From positions 76,756,001 to 76,820,000 of the forward strand of contig NC_043008.1 in the NCBI RefSeq assembly GCF_006345805.1: a stretch of 64,000 bases of DNA, in the 5' to 3' direction. This DNA is from Octopus sinensis (taxonomy: Eukaryota). Positions 24,201 to 27,200 of this stretch are shown here, one piece after another. Within the stretch, counting starts at the first letter, position 1; each line of letters opens with the position of its first letter. The position numbers and the translations under genes are program-made. The notes under the pieces were generated by a model. That model saw only the letters and a list, made by a program, of their open reading frames with translations, had not been told where the DNA came from and did no database searches.

Positions 24201-27200
24201 CCCCCACCATTACTTGACAACCAATGATGGTGTGTTTACTTCTCCATAACTTAGTGGTTCGGCATAAGAGACTGATAGAATAAGTACTAGGCTTACAACG
24301 AATAAGTACTGTGGTCGATTTCTTTGACTAAAAAACCCTTAAAGGTGGTTCTCCAGCATGGCCACAGTCAAATTACTAAAACAAGTGAAAGAGTAGAAGA
24401 CACTTGCCCAAAGTGTTATGTGCAGGGACTGAGCCAAAACCACATGGTTTGGAAGTAAGCTCACTGAGTTGGAAGAGTAGAAGAAGGGAACGAGAAAAAT
24501 AAGCTGCCAGCTAGAAATTAGGAGTGTTTAAAACAATTTGGCGTGACAACACACCCCATGTAACTAACAAAGGGTTAACAGATTTACAATGTGACAAAAA
24601 CACAACTGTTAAGGAGGCTGACAAAGGACGTTCAGTTATTATTATGGATACAGATTATTACAAGAATTTGGTATAGGATATGCTACAAGATAATATTTAC
24701 TATAGATATACACACATACACATCATGTATATATATGCATATATATATTTGTATATATGAGAGTGTGTATGTATATGTATGTATGCATGTGTATATATAT
24801 ATATGTGTGTGTGTGTGTATGTATATATGTGTGTGTATATATATATATATGTGATACGAGTAAATATTTACATTTGAAGCAAACTTTAGGTCATCTGTAT
24901 CACTCGGGCTCATCACAGATTTTGTATAAGACACATGTATAGAACAGAAACTTTTCATTGATTGAAATTTAAATCCTAATCTCTAGAGAAATTTATTGTT
25001 TCAAGAAAAAATTGAATTTGAATTACTTAATTGTGCGGTTAGAAACCCCTCTGTTTGTCAGGTATGTTTTGCGTCTGCGCAATGGTCTTAAAAGTTAGAG
25101 AATGCAAGTCGCTAGAACCGCACATGTTTCTAACGAAATGTACTTCTAGGATAACAAAGGCTGCTTACTGAAGAGTCTAGCCTTGGCAGATAAATTATAT
25201 TTACTGCTAAAAAAAAGACGAAACTGCAGTATAAGATGAGCCGAGTTTGTAAACGTTTTTGATTTTATTTCATTGAATTTATCCACTTTTTGTGATCTAG
25301 TACTTGCTTCTTCTTTTAGAAGCCTTTTAATGTACTTATATATATCATCATCATCATCATCATCATTTAACGTCCGCTTTCCATGCTAGCATGGGTTGGA
25401 CGGTTCAACTGAGGTCTGGGGAGCCCGAAGGCTGCACCAGGCCAGTCAGATCTGGCAGTGTTTCTACAGCTGGATGCCCTTCCTAACGCCAACCACTCCG
25501 AGAGTGTAGTGGGTGATTTTATGTGCCACCGACACAGGTGCCAGACGAGGCTGGCAGACGGCCACGCTCGGATGGTGTTTTTATGTGCCACTGACACAGG
25601 TGCCAGATGAGGCTGGCGAACGGCCACGATCGGATGGTGTTTGTTACGTGCCCACAGCACGGAGGCCCGTCGATATATATATATATATATATATATATAA
25701 GAGCGTGGCCGTTGCCAGTACCGCCAGACTAGCCCTCATGCCGGTGGCACATAAAAGCACCCACTACTTTCTCAGAGTGGTTGGCATTAGGAAGGGCATT
25801 CAGCTGTAGAAACTTTGCCAGATCAGACTGGAGCCTGGTGCAGCCATCTGGTTTGCCAGTCCTCAGTCAAATCGTCCAACCCATGCTAGCATGGAAAGCA
25901 GACATTTGATGATGATGATATATATATATACATTTCGTGTTGTTTACGTTTTGTGACATCCTGTACCCATATATGCATACGTATATGTATGTATGTACAT
26001 ATATGTGTGTATATATGCATATGTATATATATTTTATTCATATTATTATATACATACAAGGTTTGATCAATAAGTATCCAGACTGTTGCTATAGTAACGA
26101 AACTAAAGCATGCAGAGTGAAGCCACTTGGCACAGACTGACCTTGGATTCTGCTGTGGATGTGCACTAAGTTTTAATGTTTTAGCTCACTTCCACTGTTT
26201 ACAGCAGTGCCTGGAAGGAAGGTGTGTAGTGTGTGATCATCACATTGACCATGGCAGTACCTGCTGAGAGGCCCATGCAAAATTGCAGAAAGTGTATGGA
26301 GTGTATGAGCCACACACAATTGTACAAGTGGTTCTGGTGCTTCCAAAAAATGTCGATATTAACAACCACTCTGGGTGACCTGCAACCAGCAGAATTGAGA
26401 AAAACATCGCAGATGTGCATGCAGCTGCATGGGGAAATCATCAAATCACCTTCCATGAGTTATCAGAGGATGTGCATCTTAGTTAAGGTTTTTTTCAGTC
26501 CATTGTCACTGAAGATTTGGGTATGAGACGCATGTCTGCCAAATTTGCACCAAAACTGCTTTCAGCTGAGCAAAAGGACACTCAGGTTTCAGTTGCACAA
26601 GACCTGTTTGATTGTGTCGAGAATGATGACAACATTTTGAAAACCCAGCGTAGGCCTCTTAGCAGATATCGCCAAACTTTTGACAAAATTTGATCATGAT
26701 TCTCTGCTCAGCTTTCTCTGCCATGGTCAGTGCGACAATCACACCCTACACGCCTTCCTTCCATGCACTGCTATAAACAACAGACGTGAGCTAGGACGTT
26801 AAAACTTAGTGCGCAAGCGGCTTCACTCTGCATGCTTTACCTTTGTTATTATAGCATCAGTCCAGATACTTATTGATCAGATCACATACATATATATATA
26901 TACATACGTACATACATATATGTACATATATACTTACACATATATATATATATATATATATATATATATATATATATGCATATATGGATAGAGGACGTCA
27001 CAAAATGTAAACAGCATAAAATATGAAGACAAACTTGGGTATGCAAACAGTGAGAGAAACAAATGGAAGCTGAGTGAAGTCCATCATATATATATTATAT
27101 ATATATATATATATATATATATATATATATATATATATAATGATTCACAGTCAATGTGCAGAAATGGCGTATTCCAAATGAACAAGGGTTAATCATGTGA

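Follow-up and report, generated by a model that had tools for sequence, protein, structure and literature searches.

The window, a 64,000-nucleotide stretch of Octopus sinensis contig NC_043008.1, contains a WD40-repeat gene whose coding exons were located on the + strand by tblastn with the cuttlefish orthologue (18084–18212, about 23183–23556, 31067–31196, and 32735–32866). A hammerhead motif (25164–25235) is found on the coding strand within the intron separating the exon that ends at ~23.4–23.6 kb (‘exon 2’, 23183–23556) from the exon that starts at 31.07 kb (‘exon 3’, 31067–31196), both of which are placed on the + strand by tblastn homology and splice signals. As a protein query for paralogues or orthologues, the exon 2 peptide returned zero matches. 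A preliminary description had assigned the motif to ‘intron 2’ of this gene; its intronic position stands under either of two exon 2 donors, but the donor with the best consensus (23557) and the sole open acceptor (31065–66) differ in phase, and it is an alternative donor at 23394 that is phase-compatible.

Reading of the sequence and a descriptor scan agree exactly on a type I hammerhead at 25164–25235 (+) that is complete and has a canonical core. Helix I is formed by four Watson–Crick pairs between CUUA (25164–25167) and UAAG (25232–25235), and is followed by the catalytic core C3–A9 (CUGAAGA, 25168–25174), which agrees with the consensus of the Rfam model RF00163. Helix II with its extension spans 25175–25219 and has a base of four Watson–Crick pairs, including G10.1-C11.1, between GUCU (25175–25178) and AGAC (25216–25219), while the core is completed by G12 A13 A14 (25220–25222). 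An 8-nt palindrome, ACUGCAGU (A15.1 to U16.1, 25223–25230), constitutes helix III and can form, as a monomer, an A-U and a C-G pair closed by a UGCA loop or, as a homodimer, 8 bp. H17 is an A (25231) within a GUA triplet, which predicts a scissile bond between 25231 and 25232; self-cleavage there would leave 2’,3’-cyclic phosphate and 5’-OH ends. Thus, C3 U4 G5 A6 N7 G8 A9, G12 A13 A14, the A15.1-U16.1 pair, and an H17 other than G are all present, in the type I order of an open helix I and closed helices II and III with G10.1-C11.1. The sense-strand, intronic hammerhead of the preliminary description, with Watson–Crick stems I and II, a GUA cut after 25231, and a palindromic stem III, was thereby recovered in each of its parts.

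The helix II insert is 37 nt long and folds as one imperfect hairpin (−10.6 kcal/mol, z = −3.6). At physiological Mg2+, rapid cleavage depends on a tertiary interaction of loop 1 with loop 2; no canonical form of such a contact is recognisable here, with helix I of 4 bp (canonical, 6) and a loop 2 that consists of the 37-nt hairpin. A possible stem closing helix I (GGCU/AGCC, 25159–25162 and 25239–25242, +) appears in both the minimum free energy (MFE) fold and the fold constrained to the hammerhead, separated from helix I by an asymmetric internal loop (G on one side, AUG on the other).

The palindromic helix III signature, searched with the true core, occurs at three independent loci (four copies) in the window. 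The second locus (27435–27524, − strand) has helix I UUUCGG/CCGAAA, core CUGAUGA, a 59-nt helix II, GAAA, the palindrome ACAAUUGU, and H17 = A, and its centroid fold is hammerhead-shaped. It belongs to a head-to-head inverted repeat (27399–27759) with one hammerhead in each arm (27399–27533 and 27625–27759), in which the arms are 97% complementary, the spacer is 91 nt, and the left end adjoins (TA)n. The inverted twin (27638–27719, +), sense to the gene and with the same palindrome, is decayed, its helix I having been disrupted by CpG-type transitions (CCGAAA to CCAAAA); as the differences between the arms are of the CpG type and one of them breaks helix I, the pair points to neutral decay. 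The third locus (1465–1574, −) combines UCU/AGA, CUGAAGA, GGC...GCC, GAAA, the palindrome ACAGCUGU, and H17 = C with an 82-nt hairpin as helix II (z = −5.7). All three independent loci combine a perfect core with a helix II that is a long hairpin and a helix III that is an 8-nt palindrome; they share no homology beyond low-complexity TA runs (blastn within the window) and have the core alone in common in a MAFFT alignment. Allowing one core mismatch, no decayed copies were found in the 64 kb. The CpG within GACGAAA of the 25164–25235 motif is intact, and this, together with the perfect cores at all three loci, could mean either youth or selection. The hammerheads of the window lie on both strands, with one locus outside the gene, and the presence of at least three independent loci on both strands argues for dispersed copies of mobile elements and not for a gene-specific device.

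The motif at 25164–25235 is non-random. When the window was dinucleotide-shuffled 1000 times, three of the shuffles matched the strict descriptor (0.003 per window), none of the 262 relaxed matches in shuffled sequence had a palindromic helix III, and 539 decoys with permuted cores gave a mean of 0.0037 loci with the palindromic signature on the real sequence vs. the three observed with the true core. Agreement of the candidate with the metazoan consensus also reaches past the core, to GAGUC...GACGAAAC. Against Rfam, the candidate matches Hammerhead_1 (RF00163, clan CL00010) over the full length of the model with 24.3 bits (E = 0.18 for the window over 4227 families, ~4e-5 for RF00163 alone), short of the gathering score of 34 bits mainly on account of 31 nt inserted in the loop of helix II. 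The whole window had zero Rfam matches at the gathering threshold, and the candidate was the only match returned at the E-value threshold; a match to the RAGATH-1 hammerhead (22.3 bits; gathering score, 56.3) reads the same bases in another register and was rejected. Neither the locus at 1465 nor that at 27435 was detected by the Rfam models, so both rest on the descriptor used here and its controls. The sub-threshold score, the shortness of the helices (4 bp each in I and II, 2 bp in III), and the order of 100 strict-descriptor matches that 0.003 per 64 kb would yield in a genome assumed to measure a few Gb would all suit an AT-rich intronic sequence that resembles the hammerhead consensus by chance; set against the shuffle rate, the decoys, and the extended consensus, such a coincidence is extremely unlikely. 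The long helix II common to all three loci is penalised by the Rfam models, such that copies of this kind are missed at gathering thresholds.

The candidate is contained in a unique block of ~480 bp (24860–25343, +, inferred boundaries) that may represent a solo retroelement fragment, bordered on the left by a (TG/TA)n microsatellite and on the right by TATATATA(ATC)n and a SINE-like repeat. Within the window, blastn returned no further copies of the block, of the inverted-repeat element, or of the 1465 locus. The ten larger open reading frames (ORFs) examined, in a scan that was not exhaustive, belong to a LINE or a mariner element or are unassigned, and none is a Penelope-like ORF (reverse transcriptase (RT) plus GIY-YIG). 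Joined into one chimeric query, all small ORFs that overlie the hammerhead loci had zero protein matches at E ≤ 10; exact look-ups of the candidate, the inverted-repeat arm, and the mariner and LINE RT ORFs returned zero records; and neither the pattern of the candidate type nor that of the inverted-repeat type had a match in metagenome scans. The attribution of the block to a retroelement is putative, as are its family and limits.

Folding predictions bear on whether the motif could cleave unaided. Constrained to the hammerhead, the monomer has a predicted energy of −15.1 kcal/mol vs. −21.2 kcal/mol for the MFE fold, equivalent to ~7e-6 of the ensemble, and pairing of core bases with the 3’ strand of helix III is what places the active fold 6 kcal/mol above the MFE. 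Specifically, UACUG of the core could pair instead with CAGUA, composed of the helix III 3’ strand with U16.1 and H17. With a 2-bp helix III, this competing pairing, and a long hairpin in place of loop 2, cleavage of the monomer is expected to be slow or absent. Nearest-neighbour energies leave out tertiary contacts, and the low activity of the candidate is accordingly a prediction. A ribozyme that cleaves each pre-mRNA unaided, whether or not splicing is affected, would resemble hammerheads of invertebrate retrozymes, in which 2 bp and a tetraloop in helix III are said to be typical and efficient monomer cleavage is possible (PMC7229834). The perfect core, G10.1-C11.1, and a GUC/GAC helix II base that is the canonical metazoan consensus are in keeping with this behaviour, and the closing stem and internal loop of helix I could provide a tertiary contact. 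However, the energetic cost of the active fold, the 4 bp of helix I before the internal loop, the hairpin that obscures any canonical loop 1–loop 2 contact, and a palindromic loop that is the signature of dimer-dependent motifs (PMC4209133) make autonomous cleavage unlikely.

Among metazoan type I hammerheads, those whose helix III is short and palindromic are weak alone and active as dimers (PMC4209133; PMC7229834; PMC3088659 Fig. S8), and those with a helix III of 1–2 bp and a palindromic loop of 2–4 nt are inactive as monomers and active as dimers (PMC4209133, PMC7229834, PMC3088659). The proposal in the preliminary description that the motif would be a poor monomer but an active dimer matches this established behaviour of the class, and thermodynamic modelling agrees with it: the double-hammerhead dimer, with a predicted −47.1 kcal/mol, is near-optimal relative to the dimer MFE (−48.1 kcal/mol) and compares with −42.4 kcal/mol for two free monomers. 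The predicted gain on dimerisation is ~5 kcal/mol, from which a Kd in the roughly millimolar range would follow, and trans dimerisation of a single-copy pre-mRNA is therefore implausible.

Taken with the local population of hammerheads, these features suggest, with a probability of roughly 0.65, that the candidate is a solo, transposon-derived, dimer-type hammerhead that is weakly active or inactive and without a function for the host. The motif is a real hammerhead of type I and of the metazoan ‘dimer-type’ class, which is borne by Penelope-like retroelements (PLEs) and their non-autonomous derivatives (non-LTR retrozymes and satellite repeats), and would have arrived in a solo, probably 5’-truncated, retroelement fragment that inserted by chance, in the sense orientation, into the intron of this cephalopod WD40-repeat gene. 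The hammerhead would as a consequence be present in each pre-mRNA, and efficient cleavage would need an identical second copy, with which the candidate would build a double hammerhead through a helix III of 8 bp and a helix I joining the two molecules; no such identical copy lies in cis within the window.

The closest known counterparts are the minimal, small-palindromic-helix-III hammerheads of PLEs (Cervera & de la Pena 2014, PMC4209133), with which the candidate shares the type I topology, a helix I of 4–5 bp, G10.1-C11.1, a helix II above the canonical size, palindromic 15.x–16.x positions and loop 3, and a dimer-dependent design. Metazoan PLE hammerheads are reportedly extremely sequence-variable within one genome (PMC4209133), and both this variability among copies and their massive dispersal may be mirrored by the loci of the window. 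Inverted 5’-truncated copies and microsatellite targeting have been described for PLEs (PMC8557442), in line with the head-to-head inverted pair adjoining (TA)n at 27399–27759. Unlike the PLE hammerheads, the window has no recognisable PLE ORF (among the ten examined) or pseudo-LTR, its loci have a helix II of 45–85 nt compared to the 6–8 bp described, and helix III of the candidate is a full 2 bp with a tetraloop and is not missing. The hammerheads of non-LTR retrozymes and of the newt and axolotl satellites (PMC7229834) likewise have a weak helix III that ends in a palindromic tetraloop, an AT-rich unit of a few hundred bp, a GUC/GAC helix II base, and C15.2-G16.2 as in the RF00163 consensus, and they pair poor cleavage of the monomer with efficient cleavage of the dimer (for the candidate, predicted only), the dimer mechanism being that of Forster et al. 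1988, as cited in PMC7229834. These elements, however, form tandem arrays that supply a partner in cis and retain a short loop 2 with a loop 1–loop 2 contact, whereas the candidate is solo and has a long hairpin.

Dimer-type hammerheads of metazoans are expected to have a compatible second copy close by, in tandem or at up to about 50 kb. A tandem array is absent from the window, as is, across the 64 kb, a second copy whose helices I and III are compatible, and there is no other occurrence of GAAACUGCAGU. The other two hammerheads in the same intron differ from the candidate in their helix I and helix III sequences, which makes pairing with it impossible; a heterodimer with the sense copy at 27638 was considered and rejected, as CUUA/UAAG and ACUGCAGU are not complementary to UUUCGG/CCAAAA and ACAAUUGU. 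The claim in the preliminary description that a second copy could trigger concentration-dependent cleavage of the intron is consequently not upheld, given the lack of a compatible copy in the 64 kb, the gain of ~5 kcal/mol, and the dispersal of the sibling loci. Taken as a co-opted regulatory ribozyme in which a second copy in cis or trans triggers destruction of the pre-mRNA depending on concentration, the idea takes support from the intronic, sense-strand position, the near-optimal dimer, and the existence in amniotes of conserved intronic type I hammerheads of retroelement derivation (PMC6155905, PMC3088659). Those in RECK, CTCL/C10orf118, and DTNB (de la Pena & Garcia-Robles 2010; PMC6155905; PMC3088659) are, like the candidate, sense-strand type I motifs in introns of protein-coding genes and are likewise thought to derive from retroelement hammerheads. 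They differ in being ultraconserved across orders or classes, whereas the orthologous cuttlefish locus (32.8 kb; a very distant species) has no hammerhead, and in being active as monomers in vitro with tertiary contacts or a pseudoknot retained, whereas the candidate monomer is predicted to be poor. Further, the predicted gain would be far too weak at pre-mRNA concentrations, sibling hammerheads occur on both strands and also outside the gene, and, in the mapped Xenopus genomes, non-LTR retrozymes showed depletion from introns and exons compared with intergenic DNA (bioRxiv 10.64898/2026.07.22.740005). A regulatory role for the host is thus very unlikely.

Partners in trans could in principle come from elsewhere in the genome, if plentiful RNAs, both linear and circular, from a transcribed retrozyme family paired with intronic copies and cut them as a by-product. 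Metazoan retrozymes are expressed as plentiful RNAs, both linear and circular, of 170–400 nt, including in a mollusc (PMC7229834), and the presence of three hammerhead loci within 64 kb suggests that copies are numerous, but a partner must share both helix I and helix III, in which all three loci of the window differ, and tandem units are absent from the window; the likelihood of this scenario is slight, much like that of co-option. It is also improbable, if not quite to the same degree as co-option, that the three loci represent an undescribed cephalopod lineage of hammerhead retroelements, with sense intronic copies cut in vivo through trans pairing with abundant family RNAs. Were such a lineage to exist, the fate of host pre-mRNA would be coupled to the expression of a retroelement.

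If a solo hammerhead of retroelement descent is the correct explanation, the candidate is an ordinary annotation item, a cephalopod addition to the very widespread type I hammerheads borne by retroelements. A single hammerhead match needs to be weighed against the local population of the motif before a gene-specific function is proposed. Sense-strand intronic copies do exist in the window, and a genome-wide bias in the orientation of such copies could reveal harm to host transcripts.

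Both our own scan with a hammerhead descriptor and direct reading of the window placed the candidate, a hammerhead motif in an intron of the WD40-repeat gene, at exactly 25164–25235 (+), the interval claimed in the preliminary description, and the canonical core, Watson-Crick stems I and II, GUA cut at 25231/25232 and palindromic stem III claimed with it were all found in the sequence. Helix I comprises four Watson-Crick pairs (CUUA, 25164–67; UAAG, 25232–35) and can be extended across a small internal loop by a 4-bp closing stem (GGCU, 25159–62; AGCC, 25239–42). Core positions C3–A9 (CUGAAGA, 25168–74) precede the base of helix II (GUCU, 25175–78; AGAC, 25216–19), which includes G10.1-C11.1 and encloses a 37-nt insert (25179–25215) that folds as one imperfect hairpin (helix II segment, −10.6 kcal/mol; z = −3.6). 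G12, A13 and A14 (GAA, 25220–22) lead into helix III, the 8-nt palindrome ACUGCAGU (25223–30), and H17 (A, 25231) completes the GUA triplet. The motif lies in a ~480-bp unique block bordered by a (TG/TA)n tract and TATATATA(ATC)n. A copy of a SINE-like repeat begins ~110 nt 3' of the hammerhead, directly after the (ATC)n tract; copies of this repeat (85–96% identical, both orientations) occur at 21310–21512, 25344–25534, 25739–25919 and 27981–28088.

A query of concatenated exons retrieved a WD40 protein of the cuttlefish Acanthosepion pharaonis, with which tblastn mapped exons on the + strand at 18084–18212, about 23183–23556, 31067–31196, 32735–32866 and about 35243–35320. Because these exons flank the candidate, its description as intronic and sense-strand holds. 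The best-consensus donor of exon 2 (tga/GTAAGT at 23557; phase 2) does not join exon 3 in frame, as the sole open acceptor (31065–66) requires phase 1, and a weaker, phase-compatible donor is present at 23394 (ctt/GTGAAG). Either the ORF overstates the length of exon 2 or a small exon is absent from the mapped set; the equivalent exons are joined directly in the cuttlefish model, and the candidate is intronic with either donor.

Rfam reported nothing in the window at gathering level. The type I model RF00163 matched the candidate in a full-length alignment scoring 24.3 bits, which extends past the invariant core to GAGUC...GACGAAAC. A 31-nt insertion in the helix II loop is penalised by the model and keeps the score below the gathering score of 34. 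The E-value is 0.18 for the window and 4227 families and ~4e-5 for RF00163 alone. A strict descriptor (Watson-Crick pairs only; helices of at least 4, 4 and 2 bp) matched three of 1000 dinucleotide shuffles of the window, or 0.003 per window.

When G-U pairs and 3-bp stems were permitted, this descriptor recovered two further independent loci in the window, and all copies found have perfect cores, since permitting one core mismatch added none. The second locus (27435–27524, −) consists of UUUCGG/CCGAAA, CUGAUGA, a 59-nt helix II, GAAA and ACAAUUGU, then A, and the third (1465–1574, −) of UCU/AGA, CUGAAGA, GGC...GCC enclosing an 82-nt hairpin, GAAA and ACAGCUGU, then C. Helix III is a full 8-nt palindrome at all three loci; among the 262 relaxed matches from 1000 shuffles, none had a palindromic helix III and only three had an 8-nt span. 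In the real sequence, a descriptor with palindromic helix III yielded three loci with the true core (four copies with a 2-bp helix I) and a mean of 0.0037 loci with permuted-core decoys (n = 539). These comparisons show that the shared palindromic form of helix III is not expected by chance. Helix II is a single long hairpin at each locus (z = −3.6, −2.5 and −5.7), and the three share no sequence outside the motif. The third locus lies ~16.5 kb upstream of the WD40 start codon, with a (TA)n tract ~180 nt downstream of its hammerhead; its helix II hairpin is very stable (−35.9 kcal/mol).

The second locus and its twin (27638–27719, +) occupy the two arms, one motif per arm, of an inverted repeat in the candidate's intron (27399–27533 and 27625–27759; 135 nt, 97% complementary, 91-nt spacer). 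The pair is head-to-head with 3' ends outward and its left end adjoins (TA)n, an arrangement that fits the described structure of Penelope-like element (PLE) insertions, which are frequently 5'-truncated, frequently carry an inverted copy that generates inverted repeats, and show a preference for microsatellites (PMC8557442). CpG-type transitions distinguish the two arms, and one of these has destroyed helix I in the sense copy; this is neutral decay. In pre-mRNA the arms would pair into an extended, almost perfect dsRNA hairpin that might serve as a substrate for RNA editing or dicing.

Published descriptions of dimer-type and PLE-associated hammerheads match these loci closely. In PLE-associated motifs, helix I is short (4–5 bp), helix II is enlarged, G10.1-C11.1 is conserved, and sequences vary extremely within one genome (PMC4209133); the palindromic stem III/loop III has been illustrated for repeat-type hammerheads (PMC3088659, Fig. 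S8). The class is thus already known, and the mildly unusual trait is the very long helix II common to the three loci. None of the ten ORFs tested in the window was a PLE ORF (APE-RT LINE, mariner element or without assignment). Among the papers listed by a literature search on hammerhead ribozymes in octopus, none described hammerheads in cephalopods; the one relevant paper treats the Naiad PLEs of Octopus species, which lack canonical hammerheads.

Sense-strand type I hammerheads also occur in amniote introns, in RECK, CTCL/C10orf118 and DTNB (PMC6155905, PMC3088659). Those are defined by deep conservation and monomer activity, neither of which the sequence and modelling results show for the candidate. 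A descriptor scan of the orthologous cuttlefish locus, from a very distant lineage, found no hammerhead.

Monomer and dimer folds were modelled with ViennaRNA. The monomer hammerhead fold (−15.1 kcal/mol) compares with a minimum free energy (MFE) of −21.2 kcal/mol, in which UACUG (including C3–G5) pairs with CAGUA (the helix III 3' strand, U16.1 and H17), and the active fold makes up ~7e-6 of the ensemble. Two copies can adopt the classical double hammerhead, in which helix III becomes an 8-bp intermolecular duplex and both helices I also form between the molecules (−47.1 kcal/mol). This fold lies no more than 1 kcal/mol above the unconstrained dimer MFE (−48.1) and is favoured by ~5 kcal/mol over two free monomers (−42.4). 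A dimer partner must share helix I and helix III, and the 64-kb window contains no compatible one; the sense-strand copy lying 2.4 kb downstream does not match and would in any case be tied up in a 135-bp hairpin formed with its inverted twin. Judging from the dimer energies, the 5 kcal/mol gain would correspond to roughly millimolar affinity, far above plausible pre-mRNA concentrations.

A short palindromic helix III prevents efficient monomer cleavage, while two copies close together fold into a dimer that is active (PMC4209133, citing Forster et al. 1988), and monomer-poor, dimer-active behaviour was shown experimentally for axolotl retrozymes (PMC7229834). Because the modelled monomer and dimer energies fit this mechanism, the proposal that the candidate would be a poor ribozyme by itself and an active one when dimerised is sound. 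Some monomer activity may exist, since nearest-neighbour energies ignore tertiary contacts, and a 2-bp helix III does not preclude efficiency in invertebrate retrozyme hammerheads (PMC7229834); unlike the candidate, those retain both a short loop 2 and a helix I of 6 bp. Most likely, with a probability of about 0.65, the candidate is a solo dimer-type hammerhead of retroelement origin that has little or no activity in this intron. The anatomy and dimer-type design given in the preliminary description are supported, while its regulatory part, dimer-triggered intron cleavage, is unsupported, given the lack of a partner within 64 kb and the predicted ~millimolar affinity.

Several other features were observed in the window. 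A nearly intact LINE (49802–53517, −) lies within a downstream intron, with ORFs for an APE-type endonuclease (51108–52331, −) and a reverse transcriptase (49802–51262, −) and an upstream glutamine-rich ORF that may be ORF1 (52615–53517, −). A mariner/Mos1-like transposase (46015–47108, −) is split into two ORFs, carrying the HTH_48 domain (46806–47108, −) and the DDE part (46015–46824, −). The tandem array at 20730–21298 (period 61 nt; 122-nt double units) yields long spurious ORFs on both strands. Strong sub-threshold Rfam matches to plant and animal microRNA-precursor models at 57385–57515 and 40284–40377 (71 and 55 bits; the latter on both strands) appear to be long palindromic hairpins or foldbacks of MITE type, not microRNA genes. 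The region 59100–60480 holds ~6 diverged repeat units of ~200–250 nt each, 60–78% identical, with an (AAT)n tract at each start.
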